Sequence record: MZ443769.1
Direction: 5' to 3' (one strand)
Length of the DNA stretch: 64,000 nt
Notes under the pieces: generated by a model
Databases searched by the model: none
The model's input: only the letters and a program-made list of their open reading frames with translations
What the model was told of the DNA's origin: nothing
In this document: positions 2,380 to 63,394 of the stretch, one piece after another
Layout of the letters: each line of letters opens with the position of its first letter
Numbering within the stretch: the first letter of the stretch is position 1
Program-made: the position numbers and the translations under genes

Positions 2380-3039
2380 ATGTCAAACACTAAAACTAGC
2401 CACGTTAAGCCGATTACTCTGAACACGTACAACGACCGCTACGGTGACAACTCTGTTGCTCCGATGTATGTTGTTAACCGTACCGAACCTCGTGGCAACG
2501 TTGCATTCACTGCGCAAAACGACATGGGTCAGCCTGTTGCTGTCGTTGTTCCAGCCACTTTCATCCCGATCGATCTGACTACTCAGGCAACTAAAGAAAG
2601 CCTGCTGAAATCTACTCACTTCCGTCGTGCGTTGAACATGGGTCAGTTGGTTATCATCGAAACTGACAGCGCCGAGTCGTATCTGCAAAACAACAAACTC
2701 GCTCAGTCCGAACTGCGCAAGCTGAACAAAATGGGTCATCAGCTGGACGTTGACCTGTCTCGCGGCGATAACGAAGAACTGGAAGATATCGATCTGGGTG
2801 CGGGTTCTAAGAAACGCGCAATCGTATTCGAAGGCGATAACGTCAGCTCCAACAACTTCGTCAATGCGTTTATCCAACGCGCCGCTGAAAACAGCGAAGA
2901 GTCTGACGACAACTTAGAGCGCGAATTCCTGACTAAAGGTCTGGAACTGCCTCGCTCTGAACTCGAACTGCTGCGCAAGTACATCACGCGCCCAGCTATC
3001 GTTGAACTGATCGTACAAGCACTCGACGACGCACAGTAA
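2380..3039 (+). CDS. hypothetical protein, paralogous N-domain with 557-2323
   Basis: SD (GGAG) before ATG; strong codon bias; gapless N-terminal similarity to the Ig protein. Confidence 0.8.
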   Translation: MSNTKTSHVKPITLNTYNDRYGDNSVAPMYVVNRTEPRGNVAFTAQNDMGQPVAVVVPATFIPIDLTTQATKESLLKSTHFRRALNMGQLVIIETDSAESYLQNNKLAQSELRKLNKMGHQLDVDLSRGDNEELEDIDLGAGSKKRAIVFEGDNVSSNNFVNAFIQRAAENSEESDDNLEREFLTKGLELPRSELELLRKYITRPAIVELIVQALDDAQ

Positions 3040-3094: not shown

Positions 3095-4186
3095 CTATGC
3101 CGCTGCTTTTTGTCTACTTGACTTCTTTACTACAGGCGGTGGCAACTGACATTGCCTACTCCAGCCTAACTTCTTAGCAGGTATAAGTGCTTTCTTACCA
3201 TGCTTATCTTTCAACGTCAATCGAACTTCACGAATGATTTCTTTTGGTGCGTTGTCAGGGTCCATCTTAATCACGTTACCTTCTTTGTCTTTATCACGCG
3301 GAAGTTTGAAGTGACGTACGGGAACAGGTGAGCCAGAATTTTCAAACTCATACTTGATCTTGTCACGCAACAACTTACCACCACCGTCGTTATCAGTCAT
3401 CGTATAAACAACACTGATACCGAGCATCTCAATCGTTCTGCGTTTAGTCACACCAAACTGCTCTGCACCTAACACAGCGATTGCTGGAATGCCTTGTGAT
3501 AATAAAGCAAGCGCATCACGAGGACCTTCAACAAGAACAACGTAACGAAGCCCATATTCTTTGATGCAGTCTTTCACTAGCTGCAACGGGAACAGACCTT
3601 TCTCTTTCGCCCAATCACCTTGCGAGTTCACATAGCTTGTGCCGTTCATTTGCTTACGCAGATACGCAGCGACACCACCTATGTATTTCGTTCCATGCTT
3701 ACACGGGAAGAAACAAACGTTACTACCTGTTCGCTGTGCATTCAATAAACCACCAGCAGCACGAACAAGCGATCCCGGATATGTACGCCACTCAACATCG
3801 AGAGGCCATTCCATATAACTGTTTCTGCCTAACGCTTTCATCAATGAAGCGACAGAAGCATAGGTACCAATCTTCGAACCGAGCTTCTCGTATGTTTTAA
3901 GCAATGCACTGAGACTGTTCGACCCAGCATCTTTCAATGCCCAGCCTTTTATCTCTTGAAGCCCACACTGCTTCGCTAAATCATTCCACCCGCCTTTTGC
4001 ACCACAACCGAAGCAGTGAAAGAAGCCTAATGGAATCTCCATCCCTACAGAAGTGTAAATACCACAACTAGGGGACTTATCGCTGTGGAACGGACAGCAT
4101 ACCATAACAGTATCTCCCGCAAACTTTCTGTCTCCGGGAATCTTTGCTATCTCGTCCATTATTACCTGATGAACGTCATCTGCCAT
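3095..4186 (-). CDS. DNA primase (CHC2 zinc finger + TOPRIM)
   Basis: CPFHSDKSPSC...HCFGC zinc-binding motif; TOPRIM LVEGPRDALAL and TDND motifs. Confidence 0.9.
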   Translation of the reverse strand: MADDVHQVIMDEIAKIPGDRKFAGDTVMVCCPFHSDKSPSCGIYTSVGMEIPLGFFHCFGCGAKGGWNDLAKQCGLQEIKGWALKDAGSNSLSALLKTYEKLGSKIGTYASVASLMKALGRNSYMEWPLDVEWRTYPGSLVRAAGGLLNAQRTGSNVCFFPCKHGTKYIGGVAAYLRKQMNGTSYVNSQGDWAKEKGLFPLQLVKDCIKEYGLRYVVLVEGPRDALALLSQGIPAIAVLGAEQFGVTKRRTIEMLGISVVYTMTDNDGGGKLLRDKIKYEFENSGSPVPVRHFKLPRDKDKEGNVIKMDPDNAPKEIIREVRLTLKDKHGKKALIPAKKLGWSRQCQLPPPVVKKSSRQKAAA

Positions 4187-4229
4187 ACCTTACCTGCCTT
4201 CTTTCGTAATTTCATAGCATATAAGCGTA

Positions 4230-4236
4230 TTTACAG
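4230..4236 (-). promoter_or_regulatory. CTGTAAA motif upstream of primase
   Basis: TTTACAG on + strand, ~44 nt upstream of the only minus-strand gene. Confidence 0.6.
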
Positions 4237-4253
4237 ATAAAGGAAAAAAGACA

Positions 4254-4595
4254 ATGGTTAATGCGCATCGTTACGTGCATACAGCGGTACGTCGCTTCTA
4301 TGCACCACATTGGATTCAATTTTGTGATCAGATTAAAGTAAGCCCGCAGACGCATGGTGCATTCGACAAGCAAGACAACATGCTTGGTCTGCAACTGCCC
4401 CGTAACTTGTTTGACCAACGTATCGATCAGATGGTGCGTCCGCTCAAGTTGGTTTATTCTGTTAAGGAAAATGAAGTAGAGTCTCGCTGCTATCTGTTCG
4501 GCGTTCGCTATTACGTTTTTGTTTTCTTCGAAGAAGTTATCGCTGTCAGTGAGGACACATATGAGAACGTTCGCAGCCGTACCCAGCAGGGCTAA
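4254..4595 (+). CDS. hypothetical protein (113 aa)
   Basis: AAGGA SD upstream; 3' end overlaps next gene. Confidence 0.55.
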   Translation: MVNAHRYVHTAVRRFYAPHWIQFCDQIKVSPQTHGAFDKQDNMLGLQLPRNLFDQRIDQMVRPLKLVYSVKENEVESRCYLFGVRYYVFVFFEEVIAVSEDTYENVRSRTQQG

Positions 4596-5646
4596 TGATA
4601 CTCGTGTGTTGTCACGTATCGGCAAGATGGTTGATGCAGCACTCGACGTAAAGATTCAAGAGAGACGCTGGCCAAAGAAGCGCGTTAGTCCTTCTATGTT
4701 TCCTATCTGTGCAATACAGGAATATGCAAAGCTCCTGTATCAGAAACACAACAACGCTGTTACTGGCGAGTCAGGTACGCTGCTGAATATCTTTGCGAAA
4801 GCAGGTACGGGGATGCACGAAGCTGTACAGAATGCTCTCGGCAATAGCGGTCAGATGGTCGGTCACTGGAAGTGTAGAAACGAGAAGTGTCCAGAACACG
4901 CGAAGACCAAAGGTAAAATGGTTGATGGTAAGTATAAGAAGGGCAAGTATACGCGCACTCGTAGCACGAATAATATTTGTCCCTGTTGCCAACAACCGAT
5001 GGCTTATGCAGAACTCAAAGTCCTGTACAAGTCGCTCAAAGGTTATGTCGATGGCCTTATTGATAATCTCGACGGCACGTATAGCCTGATAGATTTGAAA
5101 TCAACGACGATCAAGAAAGCTGGTGACGGTACCTTCTTCGTGAAGTATCACCGTTTCCAGATCGCAACGTATGCTTACCTGCTGAAAAAGCGCTACGGAT
5201 ATAACATCGTCGATTACACATTGATTTATGTACCCCGCGATAATCCGAAGAACTTTGTTGAGAAGACTTTCCTTTTCGATGAAGCTGAATCAAAGCGCAC
5301 AAAAGATTTTATGATGGAGCAAATTAACGCATGGGACGCGGCTGTTACTTCTGCTGCTAAGTCAGATCCCCTTGCAGCGATGAAGCGCAAGCCTTGCAAA
5401 AGTCCCGAGTATTACTGGGACGAGTTCCACGGTTACGATGTATGCCCCTTTGTTGATTACTGTTTCATACAGTCACACCTGATCGAGTTCCTCGCAAAAC
5501 TGGAACAACGAATCATGGCTAACCCCGATCTGTCTTATACGGAGATTATCAAGACAAGTCGGAAAACTCAACAACAAGGATTGATGCAGGACAAAGCGAA
5601 GAAGTCGCAACGTCCCGCAGTGATCGTAAAACAATTTGAACTATGA
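4561..5646 (+). CDS. Cas4-like PD-(D/E)XK exonuclease
   Basis: Start set at ATG 4561 (GAGGA SD); PSMFPIC, HEAVQ, YVDGLID..IDLKST, QIATYA motifs; C-terminal Cys cluster (PC...CPF..YC). Confidence 0.8.
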   Translation: MRTFAAVPSRANDTRVLSRIGKMVDAALDVKIQERRWPKKRVSPSMFPICAIQEYAKLLYQKHNNAVTGESGTLLNIFAKAGTGMHEAVQNALGNSGQMVGHWKCRNEKCPEHAKTKGKMVDGKYKKGKYTRTRSTNNICPCCQQPMAYAELKVLYKSLKGYVDGLIDNLDGTYSLIDLKSTTIKKAGDGTFFVKYHRFQIATYAYLLKKRYGYNIVDYTLIYVPRDNPKNFVEKTFLFDEAESKRTKDFMMEQINAWDAAVTSAAKSDPLAAMKRKPCKSPEYYWDEFHGYDVCPFVDYCFIQSHLIEFLAKLEQRIMANPDLSYTEIIKTSRKTQQQGLMQDKAKKSQRPAVIVKQFEL

Positions 5647-6053
5647 GCATACAAAAAGACTACGAACGATCAAAGCGTAGGCTTATGACTGCTGTTCATC
5701 GAATGGAAGAACTAGGATATGTGGTGCCACGATGCGTCGATGTTATTGTCGATAAAATCCTGCCACCACAGCAAGTAGTGTCACGAAAATATTTAGTGAT
5801 GCTCATGCTGTTCAGCCAGACGTGCGAGACACTAGGTTACACTCTGACTACGCGAGAGCAACTGGTTGTTAAGCTGACACTGTTAAGCCGCAAACACCCT
5901 ACACCAGAGATACAGCGACGTATTGAGAAGCTCGATGCTCTGGTTATATCGCATGACAGGAATATCGAAAGCCAGAGATTGTTGCTTGACTATCGCAGTG
6001 CAATCCTGATTGAAATTCTTGAAGGGCGAGAACCAAATTCACGATATACCTGA
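5643..6053 (+). CDS. hypothetical protein (136 aa)
   Basis: ORF track; ATGA overlap with upstream stop. Confidence 0.65.
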   Translation: MSIQKDYERSKRRLMTAVHRMEELGYVVPRCVDVIVDKILPPQQVVSRKYLVMLMLFSQTCETLGYTLTTREQLVVKLTLLSRKHPTPEIQRRIEKLDALVISHDRNIESQRLLLDYRSAILIEILEGREPNSRYT

Positions 6054-6061
6054 GGTGCAAC

Positions 6062-6568
6062 ATGATTGTATTTATTAGTCTGAGTCAAACGACTTCTGAC
6101 AAGAATCGAGACAAACCGACTAGCCCTGAATCAAACACGGGCCGTGTCGATATCTCCGAGTACGCTAGTCTGGAGAAGAAAATCCGTCTGACTGATGAAG
6201 CTAAGGACAAAGAGAAGTTAGCTCAACAGGCTGGTGGCGGGGATTCTGTAAAGGGTAAGAAAGACGCTAAAAAAGGCGATACTTCTAAACCCAAAGAAGA
6301 TGACGCAGACGCGGATGCTGGTGACGACGATGAAGGCGGGGATGACCCGGACTTTGGCTTCGGAGGTGGTGACGATGATGCAGATGATTCTTCCGATGAT
6401 AGTGGAGACGACTCCGATGGAGCAGACGATTCTACCAAAGGCAAGAAAGGAAAGAAAGCCGGAAAATCCAAAGCTGACGAAGCTGACGATGCAGAACCCG
6501 CAAGTGACGACGGGGATGACGATGCTGAAAGCTCTGATGATGAGGAGCTCGATGACGGAGACGTGTGA
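6062..6568 (+). CDS. acidic low-complexity protein
   Basis: GAGGTG SD; D/G/K-rich; begins MIVFISLS. Confidence 0.75.
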   Translation: MIVFISLSQTTSDKNRDKPTSPESNTGRVDISEYASLEKKIRLTDEAKDKEKLAQQAGGGDSVKGKKDAKKGDTSKPKEDDADADAGDDDEGGDDPDFGFGGGDDDADDSSDDSGDDSDGADDSTKGKKGKKAGKSKADEADDAEPASDDGDDDAESSDDEELDDGDV

Positions 6569-7082
6569 CGTTGAAAAGTCATACGAGTCCATGCGTGATA
6601 TCTTGATCGCACTTCGTTATATGTGCACCAAGCGCATGGCATTTCCAATCGTTACTGCAAATATCGAGCAGAACAACGAGTATCTGGTTATGACACGGAT
6701 GGGCTTCCAAGTGAAGCCGTCCAACTTCTTTTCTGCTGTGACTGATAACAATGGTCGTGTGAACTGTGAATGGTTGTTGAAAGCATTCACGCGCATTGCT
6801 ATCTACTTTGATCTGAAACCGATCATCGTTGAAAAGAACAATCAGTATCAACCGCTGTCTACACGGTATTTCTCCAGAGAGGCTTCTGAGTTTGCGTACA
6901 GCCGACATTACGATGTACGTGCTATGCCGCAAGTTGATTCAATCAGAAAACCTCGTGTGTATACGCTTCAAGGAGTTAACTATAATGGCGTACAAGTCGC
7001 TGGCCAAGAAACCCAAGAAGAGCGCCGCTGCGAAGCAAGCCGAAACTCGGGAGAAAGCGCACAAGCAAGCGAAACGCGGTAA
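6552..7082 (+). CDS. hypothetical protein
   Basis: 3' part of ORF 6300-7082; ATG 6552 follows GAGGAG; overlaps next gene by 98 nt. Confidence 0.55.
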   Translation: MTETCDVEKSYESMRDILIALRYMCTKRMAFPIVTANIEQNNEYLVMTRMGFQVKPSNFFSAVTDNNGRVNCEWLLKAFTRIAIYFDLKPIIVEKNNQYQPLSTRYFSREASEFAYSRHYDVRAMPQVDSIRKPRVYTLQGVNYNGVQVAGQETQEERRCEASRNSGESAQASETR

Positions 7083-7641
7083 GCTGGGAAAAGCAGTGAA
7101 GACTTTATCTGCTGCTTCTGCTAAGTCTCGTCGTATGACCAAAGGCGAGAAACGTGCAATCATGGTTACGCCGTTCAAACCACAGATTGTGCCTCAGCCC
7201 CCAACAACTCCGCTGATGCTGAAAGGTCTGTCGCTCAACATGCTGATGAAGTCAACGCCTCGTCTCATGAAAGAGAACTCGACCGAGTGTTACGTTAGTC
7301 GCTACAAGATGGGCAAGACGAAGAAAGGTCTGCCTGTCGTTACTGCAAACGTAAAACACAAAGACCCGATGCGTCCGAACAAGACTGTTCGTATTCATAA
7401 GCCGATGATCATTGGTCTTGATGATCCGTTCAAACCGATTCACAAACAAAAGCGTGTGATGTGTAGCTGCCCGTGTGAGAACTATGTTTTCATGTGGGAG
7501 TATGCGAACACTGAACACGGTGCTGCGCGAATCATTTACGGCAACGGCGAACCACCGAACTTTACTAACCCAGGTTCTGCACCGGGATTGTGCAAACACT
7601 TAATGGCTTTGGCCACACTGGTCAAGCGTAACGGAGATTGA
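6985..7641 (+). CDS. basic protein with SWIM-like zinc finger
   Basis: AAGGAG SD before ATG 6985; CSCPC...CKH motif. Confidence 0.7.
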   Translation: MAYKSLAKKPKKSAAAKQAETREKAHKQAKRGKLGKAVKTLSAASAKSRRMTKGEKRAIMVTPFKPQIVPQPPTTPLMLKGLSLNMLMKSTPRLMKENSTECYVSRYKMGKTKKGLPVVTANVKHKDPMRPNKTVRIHKPMIIGLDDPFKPIHKQKRVMCSCPCENYVFMWEYANTEHGAARIIYGNGEPPNFTNPGSAPGLCKHLMALATLVKRNGD

Positions 7642-7644
7642 TAG

Positions 7645-7869
7645 ATGTTCTTCAAAAATCCTGTTGGCGGCATTGTGCCGAACTTCCCTGTTCAGTTATC
7701 AATTGTTCAGATGCACCGCGAAGTCGCAGAACTGCATGGCGAGCTGAAAGCTGCTGGTTGTGAGATCGTTCAGCACTGCGGTGACATTGAAATCAAAGTT
7801 CCTGCCGGCATTGATATCCAGCCTATTATGGATAAACACATGCACATGTTTAATAAAGGTGCTCAATGA
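7645..7869 (+). CDS. hypothetical protein (74 aa)
   Basis: ORF track; tight packing with neighbours. Confidence 0.55.
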   Translation: MFFKNPVGGIVPNFPVQLSIVQMHREVAELHGELKAAGCEIVQHCGDIEIKVPAGIDIQPIMDKHMHMFNKGAQ

Positions 7870-16630: not shown

Positions 16631-16669
16631 CTGAACACAATGCTGTGTGTAGTCTTTGCCAATTGGCAC

Positions 16670-16699
16670 GGGAGATCATGATGGTCTCCCATTTTTTTT
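16670..16699 (+). terminator. rho-independent terminator
   Basis: GGGAGATC/GGTCTCCC stem followed by a T8 tract. Confidence 0.8.
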
Positions 16700-16736
16700 A
16701 TTTAAATTCCCAGCATATGTCTTGAGAGTCTGCGCT

Positions 16737-17756
16737 ATGTCTAAAGAAACTTACTTAGAAGTACATGATGCCTATATTGCAAACAATTTCTTGCAGGATA
16801 TTCCACGTTCTAAGCTGACAGCTCGCTTCACTGAATATTTGAATCGTGTCAAAGGCGTTGTTCCTTCCAACGGTATTCCTATGGCTGAATTCTTGCAGTG
16901 GGCAAACATGATGCCAGCTAAGGACGAGGAGATCGATTCCCGTAGAATGCTGTTTACGGTTGGCATTGTCTACACGCATTTCATCTGGTCGTTCACTAAA
17001 GCCTCCTATGTTGTTGAGCGTGACATATGGAAGCATCTTGTCGAGAGCGACTCTCCAAAAATACTACCGTCTGCTACACTCAAGCAACTCCCTCACTGGT
17101 CTCAGTGGATTGCAGCACCAGTTACTGTCACACACAAAGACAGCAAGTCCGATACATCTTACATAATTGATTCGGATGGTTTCTGGGCGACCTATGCAAA
17201 TTTCAACGAAACAACCCACATGAACCTGGCCTTTGTTGGGTCTATCAGCATTAATAACGACCGTCATATAATGCACATGCAACTTATCTTTGACATTACC
17301 AAAGATATGGAATTGATTGATGGTTTCGATTGGTTCATGTTTATATTAGGTGAAAATGGAAGTTCACACATAGACCCGAGTACACCAGAAGGTCCTGTCG
17401 TAGCTCGTATTCTTGAAGAATTTATGAAGCCTGTTGTCAACGTTCTTTTGTTCATTGCATCGGAAGTAGACAACATCTACAAGGGAGGTATGAAAAGGTT
17501 TAAACCTCGTAAGCAGGGTAACTCATACAAAGTTATACCAGTGCGCGATGTAAGAGAGTGGCGAGTAGGTACAGAGTTACTTAATGAAATTCGTACTTAC
17601 GAAAACGAAGTAGAGACTGCGAAGTCGCAAGGCCGTCGTGCTCATATACGACGCGGCCATTATCATAACTACTGGTACGGTCCGCGTACTGGTGACCGTC
17701 AGCTCAAATCAAGATGGGTTCCACCTTGTGTTGTTAGAGGCACCATCGAAGATTGA
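16737..17756 (+). CDS. AcrVA2/FinQ-like protein
   Basis: C-terminal RAHIRRGHYHNYWYG...RWVPP plus LPHWSQWI and DGFWATY, colinear with AcrVA2 as recalled. Confidence 0.65.
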   Translation: MSKETYLEVHDAYIANNFLQDIPRSKLTARFTEYLNRVKGVVPSNGIPMAEFLQWANMMPAKDEEIDSRRMLFTVGIVYTHFIWSFTKASYVVERDIWKHLVESDSPKILPSATLKQLPHWSQWIAAPVTVTHKDSKSDTSYIIDSDGFWATYANFNETTHMNLAFVGSISINNDRHIMHMQLIFDITKDMELIDGFDWFMFILGENGSSHIDPSTPEGPVVARILEEFMKPVVNVLLFIASEVDNIYKGGMKRFKPRKQGNSYKVIPVRDVREWRVGTELLNEIRTYENEVETAKSQGRRAHIRRGHYHNYWYGPRTGDRQLKSRWVPPCVVRGTIED

Positions 17757-18901: not shown

Positions 18902-18942
18902 AAAGGGCTGTCAGAAATCAATCTGATGGCCCTTTCTCTTTT
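18902..18942 (+). terminator. rho-independent terminator
   Basis: AAAGGGCTGTCAG/CTGATGGCCCTTT stem followed by CTCTTTT. Confidence 0.8.
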
Positions 18943-19006
18943 ATACGCTAATTTTTAAACGTATAAACGCGCGGTGTTCCGCTACCTCACTCTAAGGATA
19001 TTCATT

Positions 19007-19939
19007 ATGTCTTTGATTAAACTCGAAGGCGTTGCATCTACTTCTGCTGTATCAAAAGCACAGAAAGATGCGGCTGTCTACATGTTCGGTTCTAAAGGTC
19101 ACAGCATTGTTGCAGTGCTTGACAAGTTCGCTCGCGCAAAAGAAATTCAGGCGCCGCACCTTGCTGGTATTCTCGCGCTGATGAAAGATGGTGAAGATGA
19201 CGAAATCATCAAATTCACATCGTCCGCTGCTGGGAAGAAGTCTATCGTTGCTGCGAAGCAATTCGCTATTGCAAAAACGTTTACGAACGCAATCAAATAC
19301 CTGAAACTGATTCGCGTTCCGATGAAGTGGATTCCAGGCCACTCTGATACTGCGGCTGCACGTATTCAACAAACCGAAACTATTCGTGCAAGCAAACGCG
19401 CTTCTACAAAACCTGAGAAGCCTATCAAGCTTGATAACCCTCATGCACCTGAAGCCGTAGAGCAAGAACAAACCAAAGCGTCTGCCGCTATCAACAAGAT
19501 TTGGGACCTGTCTAAGTTCAAATCAAATCTTCTTGATTCGTCTTGGTCTGCGTTGATCACTGCATTCAACACAGAGTTCAAAGGTCGCTATGTGTTGAAA
19601 CTGAACAAGCGTGAAGGTGCATTCCGCATCAACACTCTCAATGGCGGTTACTCTGGTCGTGGTGAAGCATTCCTGTCTGCTGCTTTCGAAAACAATTCGT
19701 GGGTAATGTTTGCCAACGACCCTGCGACTAAGAGTGCTGCATTCGATAGTTGGTACGTCGGTCCTAAACTGACATTCGCAACAATCGTTTCGTATCTGAG
19801 CAACGAACTTGCTGGTCCTCATTCCGGTGAGAAGCAAGAGATCGATAAGCTGATCGCTGGCGCTGTTATCTTCCCGCACAATGATCGCTATTACGATGCG
19901 ACAGAAGACCAGCCGAAAAAGACTACTGCAAAAAAGTAG
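19007..19939 (+). CDS. hypothetical protein (310 aa); short product of a putative frameshifting gene
   Basis: AAGGA SD before ATG 19007; ends at slippery A_AAA_AAG TAG. Confidence 0.75.
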   Translation: MSLIKLEGVASTSAVSKAQKDAAVYMFGSKGHSIVAVLDKFARAKEIQAPHLAGILALMKDGEDDEIIKFTSSAAGKKSIVAAKQFAIAKTFTNAIKYLKLIRVPMKWIPGHSDTAAARIQQTETIRASKRASTKPEKPIKLDNPHAPEAVEQEQTKASAAINKIWDLSKFKSNLLDSSWSALITAFNTEFKGRYVLKLNKREGAFRINTLNGGYSGRGEAFLSAAFENNSWVMFANDPATKSAAFDSWYVGPKLTFATIVSYLSNELAGPHSGEKQEIDKLIAGAVIFPHNDRYYDATEDQPKKTTAKK

Positions 19940-19995
19940 TTACCAGTGCACCTGCTGCATACACTCCTTCGGGGAAAAGCGCAGATACACTGGTA
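19930..19995 (+). other. putative -1 programmed ribosomal frameshift signal
   Basis: A AAA AAG at 19930-19936; TACCAGTG 19941-48 pairs with CACTGGTA 19988-95; C(UUCG)G cap. Confidence 0.7.
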
Positions 19996-20640
19996 GACGA
20001 AATCGCAGAAACTCCTGCCAAGAAAATTGCAGCGAAAGGTCTTCGCGAGAAAGAAGAATACTTTGCTGCACTAGCTACGGTGCTAGGTCGTAACTTGCCT
20101 GCATATCGCGTAGAAGCAACGCACGAAGGTGTGACTGTTACACGTGGCTCGAAGGTCAACACTGTGCGTCTCGGCGAAAAAGCTTGGACCATTCAGATGG
20201 GCATCACTGCTAAACTGAAATCACTCGGCGCCAAGTTTGATATCGTTGATCTGCTTGGTATGATTGACAAAGGTATCGCCAGCCCAAAGCTTAAAGCCGG
20301 AGTTCCCGGCCAAGCAATGCCGATGCCTTACTTTGATGCCGTGAAGAAGAACGCGCAAGACGGAACGTATGATACCGTTATCTACATGGAAGCTGATCGA
20401 ATTTATCCTCTGGCGCTCAAGCGTGAAGGGAATATGTTCACAATGAAAGTTTCTATGTTCGGCCCTATTCAGCATTTCATCACTCAAGGTATTCAGGAGT
20501 GTGGTGCAACGCTGACTGGTGTGACGGGTAGATCATTCACGTTCAATGAAGACGATGCCAACGCATTTGAGAAGTGGCTTAAAGCTCAACGTAGACCGAA
20601 GACGCTTTCGACCAAATATCTGATGCCACAGGCTTTGTAG
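19936..20640 (+). CDS. -1 frame extension of 19007-19939 (fusion ~544 aa)
   Basis: Frame open from 19885 to 20640; the GTG at 20080 has no SD. Confidence 0.65.
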   Translation, partial: VVTSAPAAYTPSGKSADTLVDEIAETPAKKIAAKGLREKEEYFAALATVLGRNLPAYRVEATHEGVTVTRGSKVNTVRLGEKAWTIQMGITAKLKSLGAKFDIVDLLGMIDKGIASPKLKAGVPGQAMPMPYFDAVKKNAQDGTYDTVIYMEADRIYPLALKREGNMFTMKVSMFGPIQHFITQGIQECGATLTGVTGRSFTFNEDDANAFEKWLKAQRRPKTLSTKYLMPQAL

Positions 20641-20657: not shown

Positions 20658-20686
20658 AAAAAGGGGTGCCTTCGGGTGCCCCTTTT
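20658..20686. terminator. terminator with UUCG loop
   Basis: AAAAA-GGGGTGCC-TTCG-GGTGCCCC-TTTT. Confidence 0.85.
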
Positions 20687-62833: not shown

Positions 62834-63394
62834 ATGGCAAAAGCTACTAAAGGTACTAATCTGGTTCCGACCATTGTTTCCCGTATCGCAAAGAAAGCTG
62901 GTTCTATCGGAACTACCAAAGTTAAGCCAACTGATCTGCCGCACGACATTCTGATTGAAAGCGTTCACGCTTCTGAAATCGTCGGTTTCATCACAGACCG
63001 TTCTGCTACCAGCGTAACGATTCGTCACAAACGTGGCCACGGTTCTTCTGCTCAAATCGTTTCTACTTTCGGTCCTGGTCAACTGCTGACTGTTCTGGGT
63101 GAAGCCGGTTCTCACGGTCAAGTCCGTGCAATCGTGACTGCACCAGTGTGTGAGCTGAAAGGTTACACTGTTAAATTCGACGGCGCAATCATCATCGCCA
63201 CCTCAATCGAAACGGGCGAAGTGATCAACGTTAACACCAACCTGCCGGGCTACACTGTTCGCGCTACTGTTAACGAAAACGCTGCTGCTAAAAAGTACGG
63301 CACTGCTGCGCCAGTTAAAAACAAAAAAGTTGAAAAGTCTGACAAAGCCGGTAAATCTGCGAAAGCGATTAAAGGCGGCAAAGTAAAAAAGTAA
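62834..63394 (+). CDS. hypothetical protein (186 aa), basic tail
   Basis: GGAG SD; very strong codon bias. Confidence 0.8.
   Translation: MAKATKGTNLVPTIVSRIAKKAGSIGTTKVKPTDLPHDILIESVHASEIVGFITDRSATSVTIRHKRGHGSSAQIVSTFGPGQLLTVLGEAGSHGQVRAIVTAPVCELKGYTVKFDGAIIIATSIETGEVINVNTNLPGYTVRATVNENAAAKKYGTAAPVKNKKVEKSDKAGKSAKAIKGGKVKK

Follow-up and report, generated by a model that had tools for sequence, protein, structure and literature searches.

A probable programmed -1 ribosomal frameshift in a modular protein family of Erwinia jumbo phages

Among the closest described systems are Escherichia coli dnaX (tau/gamma), in which the heptamer A_AAA_AAG is read with tRNA-Lys in both sites ahead of a simple 3' stem-loop, and the OrfA/OrfAB pairs of the IS3 family of insertion sequences (IS911, IS3, IS150), in which the same heptamer lies near the end of the upstream open reading frame (ORF), with a 0-frame stop codon close by and a 3' structure, and the shift adds domains to a shorter N-terminal protein (PMC4066793, PMC5009743). 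The lambda G/GT tail assembly chaperone comes in a short and an extended form at a fixed ratio, and the csoS2 gene of the Halothiobacillus carboxysome gives two isoforms of a modular protein with the help of a 3' stem-loop and without a 5' Shine-Dalgarno (SD) element (PMC5009743). In this work, we analysed a 64-kb stretch of DNA (64,000 nucleotides, hereafter the window) of Erwinia phage pEp_SNUABM_52, in which the first reading frame of a gene, ORF1, ends in A_AAA_AAG and a stop codon, and the coding sequence appears to continue in the -1 frame (Table 1). We propose that programmed -1 ribosomal frameshifting gives a 310-aa and a 544-aa product from this two-frame gene, a reading to which we assign a probability of roughly 85% on the strength of sequence comparisons.

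The window is 100% identical to the pEp_SNUABM_52 record (MZ443769) and 99.7% identical to vB_EamM_Y3 (KY984068, genus Sasquatchvirus, hereafter Y3); both phages are 261-kb jumbo myoviruses whose host is Erwinia amylovora. The phage gene shares with dnaX the heptamer, the tRNA-Lys pair and the simple stem-loop, but it lacks the upstream SD-like stimulator of dnaX, and the proteins are unrelated. It also resembles the IS3-family genes in its layout, although it is no mobile element, encodes no transposase or DDE domain and carries a plain bulged hairpin as its putative stimulator, with no three-way junction or pseudoknot. As for lambda G/GT, the likeness lies in the pair of products, whereas no tape measure or tail tube gene is found near the phage gene, its proteins are much larger and without similarity to chaperones, and its hairpin is strong. 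Tail assembly chaperones of this type are encoded by two short ORFs placed between the genes of the tail tube and the tape measure. Neither piece of the gene has a chaperone match in PHROG or Pfam. The initial annotation of this DNA, which was made from the sequence alone, had remarked that a tail-chaperone context was not evident, and this is borne out by the neighbouring genes and by the lack of such a match. The csoS2 gene, unlike the phage gene, is cellular and codes for an unrelated protein; the two are likened by description, not at the sequence level.

The end of ORF1 is as first described, with the heptamer directly followed by TAG (19937-19939). At the other end, the sequence AAGGA lies at 18994-18998, 8 nt upstream of the ATG at 19007. 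The heptamer alone is not rare, as A_AAA_AAG occurs 11 times in the window against 16 expected. Of the 27 X_XXA_AAG heptamers found on both strands of the window, only that at 19930 has a long open frame upstream and a 0-frame stop directly after it, together with a -1 frame that stays open over a long distance and a strong fold on its 3' side. In E. coli, C_CC.A_AA.G, G_GG.A_AA.G and A_AA.A_AA.G are the most efficient heptamers, with frameshifting of ~0.3% without a stimulator and of up to 54% with the IS3 pseudoknot (PMC4066793). A short inverted repeat, ACUACU/AGUAGU at 19922-19940, brackets the A-run, so that a small hairpin could form with the heptamer in its loop; one of the pairs of this repeat is lost in the relative L015, which is introduced below. 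Another in-phase A_AAA_AAG is present at 63385-63391, where it closes a 205-codon open frame. We rejected it as a frameshift site, the -1 frame being open for only 8 codons there and no 3' structure being predicted (z 0.1), and its presence is probably due to chance.

The end of ORF1 is identical in five datasets, namely those of pEp_SNUABM_52 and Y3 (two cultured phages, one of them Swiss and the other Korean), of L013, a contig from a JGI metagenome with 98.5% identity, and of two Logan assemblies (L015 and L020). A 22-nt block comprising the heptamer, the stop codon and the 5' arm of the hairpin that follows is invariant in the four distinct variants, and the codons just upstream of it vary. 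The ORF1 of L015 has 453 aa. Its DNA is 98.8% identical to that of the window up to about residue 160, continues with an unrelated middle part, and regains identity about 8 nt before the heptamer, at 97.1% from there onward. As identity resumes so close to the heptamer despite the presence of other modules upstream, the heptamer-hairpin cassette appears to have survived a module swap.

The 64 nt after the heptamer fold with a minimum free energy of -22.3 kcal/mol (z = -3.6), and none of 200 shuffled sequences folds as well; across the 64-kb sequence, 0.8% of all 64-nt segments have equally stable folds. The same hairpin is recovered when 161 nt are folded. Its outer stem, 19940-19948 paired with 19988-19996, consists of 8 Watson-Crick pairs and one G-U pair. 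The hairpin proposed in the initial annotation is therefore real, including its perfect outer pairing and its inner CUGC/GCAG stem; its distance from the heptamer has been corrected to 3-4 nt. The C(UUCG)G cap reported at the same time is present in the window.

The 9-bp outer stem is kept in Y3, L015 and L020, and the two-frame sequences, which share it, fold at -20.8 to -23.5 kcal/mol. In 14 relatives with a single in-frame ORF, the homologous place, which was set by anchoring on conserved LVDE codons, folds at -11.5 to -17.5 kcal/mol without any common stem. The hairpin is confined to the lineage in which the frame changes. Conservation of heptamer and stem in homologues, a check suggested with the first description of the site, thus speaks for the frameshift: both are invariant in the two-frame variants, and the in-frame relatives have no stem in common. 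The 3' arm lies in conserved codons of the C1 module (Table 1) and the 5' arm in a variable linker. Three substitutions are found inside the hairpin region, all of them at unpaired and third codon positions, and only three variants of the stem exist.

In the -1 frame, open from 19885 to 20640, the first ATG, GTG or TTG codon is the GTG at 20080, with none between 19885 and that position, and no purine-rich SD sequence precedes this GTG; the open frame and the poor start had both been pointed out beforehand and are confirmed. Over the 234 codons downstream of the heptamer (the -1 piece), the window and L015 differ by 17 synonymous and 3 non-synonymous codon changes, without any indel or stop codon. 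The synonymous divergence (dS) is 0.11 and the ratio of non-synonymous to synonymous divergence (dN/dS) 0.05 (binomial p ~1e-8), similar to the dN/dS of 0.07 between ORF1 and its counterpart in L013. In the 48 codons that precede the GTG (19936-20079), all six changes are at synonymous third positions of the -1 frame (p ~3e-4), and all six would change an amino acid in either other frame. About 21 nearly invariant residues of the family fall within these 48 codons. In the AlphaFold model of the -1 piece, whose mean predicted local distance difference test (pLDDT) score is 82, the C1 helices 16-25, 28-32 and 36-53 lie in or across them. A protein started at the GTG, which is residue 49, would according to this model lack half of the C1 domain.

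By these patterns of codon change, the -1 frame is under protein-coding purifying selection from the heptamer onward. Independent initiation at 20080 is disfavoured, and the annotated GTG start is probably wrong, since it would split helix 36-53 of C1 and lacks an SD. Two other modes of initiation were considered and rejected. An independent start at a non-canonical codon is difficult to place, as the synonymous-only changes begin already at codons 5, 8 and 12 of the -1 piece, and re-initiation at a GTG just after the stop codon of ORF1 would be in the wrong frame. The programmed -1 frameshift put forward in the initial annotation is supported by the selection on the -1 frame, by the conserved residues and helices that precede the GTG and by the lack of an upstream start.

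Table 1. Positions in the window of the two-frame gene, its modules, the putative recoding signals and the flanking hairpins.
Feature	Positions	Strand	Remarks
Whole two-frame gene	19007..20640	+	In GenBank, two hypothetical proteins: Y3_249 and Y3_250; pEaSNUABM52_00251 and 00252
ORF1, 0 frame, short product (N domain and M module)	19007..19939	+	310 codons and TAG
N domain	19007..19456	+	aa 1-150, helical, ~70-77% identical in all relatives
M module	19457..19936	+	aa 151-310, ends in a Lys-rich linker; common to some relatives only, replaced in L015
Slippery heptamer A_AAA_AAG	19930..19936	+	X_XXY_YYZ phase; last seven bases of ORF1 before the stop
-1 frame coding part (C1 and C2 modules)	19936..20640	+	234 codons and stop; would be read only after the shift
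C1 module	19936..20289	+	Residues 1-118 of the -1 piece; in every relative with the N domain, usually C-terminal
3' stimulatory hairpin (putative)	19940..19996	+	9-bp outer stem, internal loops, inner stems
GTG-started ORF of database records	20080..20640	+	186 aa; cuts through C1 helix 36-53; no SD
C2 module	20290..20637	+	Residues 119-234 of the -1 piece; few relatives (SNUABM_35/36, P0009, P0021 type)
Terminator-like hairpin ending the upstream unit	18902..18935	+	Pattern scan
GC-rich terminator-like hairpin after the gene	20659..20686	+	-23.6 kcal/mol; T-run too short for the scan rule, hence not called

Using ORF1 and the -1 piece as separate tblastn queries, we found about 20 distinct relatives of the gene in Alexandravirus-like jumbo phages of Erwinia and Dickeya. 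The proteins of the family range from 270 to 728 aa; their middle modules are variable, and C2 or other modules sometimes come after C1. The -1 piece is homologous to the relatives from residues 1-9 onward. In a 434-aa in-frame relative (L014), residues 1-296 match residues 1-297 of ORF1 and residues 315-433 match residues 2-118 of the -1 piece, with only a short Lys/Ala-rich linker between the two matched parts. A search of IMG/VR and JGI metagenomes added one in-frame relative to the already known genomes and nothing else, and no internal repeat linking the M module to C1 or C2 was found. Among closely related jumbo phages, this gene family (19007-20640 in the window; loci L002-L037) stands out as a place of frequent module shuffling. 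There is also a hint of a paralogue, as ORF1 in tblastn matches a second place in the genomes of Y3 and pEp_SNUABM_52, outside the window.

A second candidate site was identified in another relative, the Logan contig L016. Its ORF1 (4001-4918, 305 aa), which is 55% identical to that of the window, contains an in-phase C_CCA_AAG one codon before its stop, and a hairpin unrelated to that of the window follows directly after the site (-14.4 kcal/mol, z -3.8). The ORF that follows lies in the -1 frame, open from no more than five codons ahead of the heptamer; the similarity of this -1 piece to the in-frame relatives sets in at residue 7-14, upstream of its first start codon (residue 27). Both heptamers of the gene family, A_AAA_AAG and C_CCA_AAG, belong to the three most efficient in E. 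coli (PMC4066793). The L016 site, too, is located at a junction of modules that occur in different relatives, so that the two -1 sites are both exactly at mosaic boundaries. On these features, L016 appears to represent an independent second case of a -1 frameshift cassette.

Tentatively, we raise the possibility that this family has acquired -1 frameshifting on at least two independent occasions, each time exactly at a mosaic junction of modules, with two different top-efficiency heptamers and two unrelated hairpins, and that the cassette stays with the downstream module during exchanges of the upstream modules and forms a 'soft junction'. If so, only some of the molecules would receive the newly joined C-terminal module at such a junction, and the ratio of the short to the long isoform would be set by frameshifting, which is impossible for the in-frame relatives.

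The most serious alternative is that the gene is split or decaying. A frameshift mutation in the homopolymer would have interrupted it, only the 310-aa protein would be made, and the downstream part would be silent or expressed from the GTG at 20080. Homopolymers are mutational hot spots, such a mutation could leave a slippery-looking heptamer by accident, and databases do annotate two genes; the single in-frame ORF of about 20 relatives and the broken gene copy in L019, described below, also go in this direction. Decay is nevertheless hard to reconcile with a -1 piece that has a dN/dS of 0.05 and has acquired no indel or stop codon over a dS of 0.11, or with the fact that the six changes before the GTG are all synonymous. 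Nor does it explain why conserved residues and three helices are encoded upstream of a GTG that has no SD, why no lineage but the one with the frame change has a stable hairpin, why the layout outlived the swap of the upstream modules, or why a second site, that of L016, combines another top-efficiency heptamer with a hairpin. We thus consider a split gene improbable.

Slightly less probable again is transcriptional slippage, in which RNA polymerase would alter the length of the A-run in some transcripts and the same long protein would be made. Documented slippage in bacteria needs about nine or more identical bases, whereas the run comprises only six A followed by a G. The hairpin at 3-4 nt fits a ribosomal stimulator and not slippage, and the C_CCA_AAG site of L016 contains no long homopolymer. 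It is true that the site in the window is a homopolymer, that homopolymer heptamers have been linked to slippage in the literature (PMC4066793) and that the protein outcome would be indistinguishable from that of ribosomal frameshifting. As for a sequencing or assembly error in a phage that really has one in-frame ORF, homopolymers are error-prone on some platforms and the frameshifts of L019 could be such errors, but the same run length and stop codon in five independent datasets, with other substitutions around them, make this explanation close to negligible.

A number of observations do weigh against programmed frameshifting. The first is that the N domain and C1 are in one frame of one ORF in the ~20 distinct relatives, and most members of the family need no recoding. 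The initial annotation had held that homologues with a single in-frame ORF would refute the frameshift; such homologues exist, but the frameshift reading is not refuted by them, because the two-frame layout recurs in five datasets, has persisted over a dS of ~0.11 and a module swap, and comes with a hairpin that is absent from the in-frame relatives. Secondly, the family does appear to suffer plain damage or assembly errors. In L019 (Logan ERR13298114 contig; the gene starts at 3001), the gene is broken by two frameshifts away from canonical heptamers; its pieces are 97-99% identical to the intact 524-aa P0021, and the upstream genes of the contig are intact. Then, some features of the signals themselves are less than ideal. 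The usual spacer of bacterial stimulators is 5-9 nt, and the 3-4 nt found here are shorter than that. No SD-like 5' stimulator is present, which sites of the dnaX/IS911 type have about 6-17 nt ahead of the heptamer, there being no GGAG/AGGA-like stretch in 19905-19929. The stem shows no covariation among its three variants, and its cap is not conserved, as UUCU replaces the C(UUCG)G of the window in Y3 and L015. A search for Rfam frameshift elements gave only chance-level matches in 19800-20150. Finally, L016 is a single contig without a close relative for a selection test.

With programmed frameshifting as the preferred reading, the following sequence of events can be proposed. Most ribosomes would translate ORF1 with its N domain and M module and terminate at the TAG, which would give the 310-aa protein. 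A fraction would pause when the two Lys codons of A_AAA_AAG occupy the P and A sites, kept in place by the hairpin 3-4 nt downstream, and both tRNA-Lys would re-pair one base back in a tandem -1 slippage. Translation would then go on in the -1 frame for 234 codons, through C1 and C2, to yield the 544-aa protein. The signals, the coding selection on the -1 frame, the colinearity with the in-frame relatives and the persistence of the cassette in diverged relatives are observed; the slip itself, its efficiency and the use of both isoforms are inferred. As to the origin of the arrangement, the ancestral state was likely a single in-frame ORF, the frame change having arisen at a junction of shuffled modules, and the 5' arm of the hairpin likely evolved in the variable linker against a 3' arm already present in conserved C1 codons.

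For annotation, this means that Y3_249/250 and pEaSNUABM52_00251/252 are almost certainly one gene with two products in each of the two phages. The mechanism is a textbook one, and the surprise for specialists should be moderate; what is added is a new, well-supported example of it, which is not annotated in databases. Known phage frameshifts are mostly those of tail chaperones and of capsid or tail extensions. The present site is found in a part of a jumbo phage genome that does not look structural, and the protein family concerned is modular and hypervariable. Taken together, the in-frame relatives, the relative that shares the site and the relative with a second site form a natural series in which the origin of a frameshift signal at a recombination junction could be followed.

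What the proteins do was approached by similarity searches. Neither piece has a match in Pfam, PHROGs, NCBIfam or PADLOC, and a sequence-profile search of the PDB gave no named match. With Foldseek, the model of the -1 piece has no match in the PDB at E <= 0.001, and in BFVD it matches only uncharacterised phage proteins, most of which are members of the same family; the AlphaFold model of ORF1 (pLDDT 48.8) was too poor for a fold search. A profile search of 1.84 billion representatives retrieved 71 clusters, the 50 most distant of which have no Pfam match and only unnamed families in PHROGs. About 50 additional protein clusters carry the first ~105 residues of the N domain joined to unrelated C-terminal parts. 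The protein looks like a conserved N-terminal adaptor domain with exchangeable C-terminal modules, and the combination of an adaptor with rapidly exchanged modules may point to a role in host interaction.

The neighbouring genes code for a RecA-like protein, a PD-(D/E)XK nuclease and hypothetical proteins. A radical SAM enzyme is encoded farther away in the window, in which no tRNA gene was found. Homologues of the ORF at 16656-17756 carry the Pfam domain PF26125 (AcrVA2-like) in relatives; the copy in the window matches only phrog_6160, with no Pfam match at E < 0.1, and this part of the window is possibly an anti-defence neighbourhood. The family member is followed, in some relatives, by a gene for a protein of about 610 aa; the L016 copy (5900-7711) carries PF27114 (Phage_tail_beta). 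A gene of similar size is present at the same position in L004 (5021-6859) and L007 (3588-5435), and none of that size follows the gene of the window.

The two-frame gene is flanked on both sides by terminator-like hairpins (Table 1). The terminator that had been noted after 20640 corresponds to a GC-rich terminator-like hairpin, the T-run of which fails the scan rule. The intergenic sequence ahead of ORF1, downstream of the terminator-like hairpin at 18902-18935, contains a palindrome, TATACG...CGTATA at 18945-18970, which could be a phage promoter or operator element.

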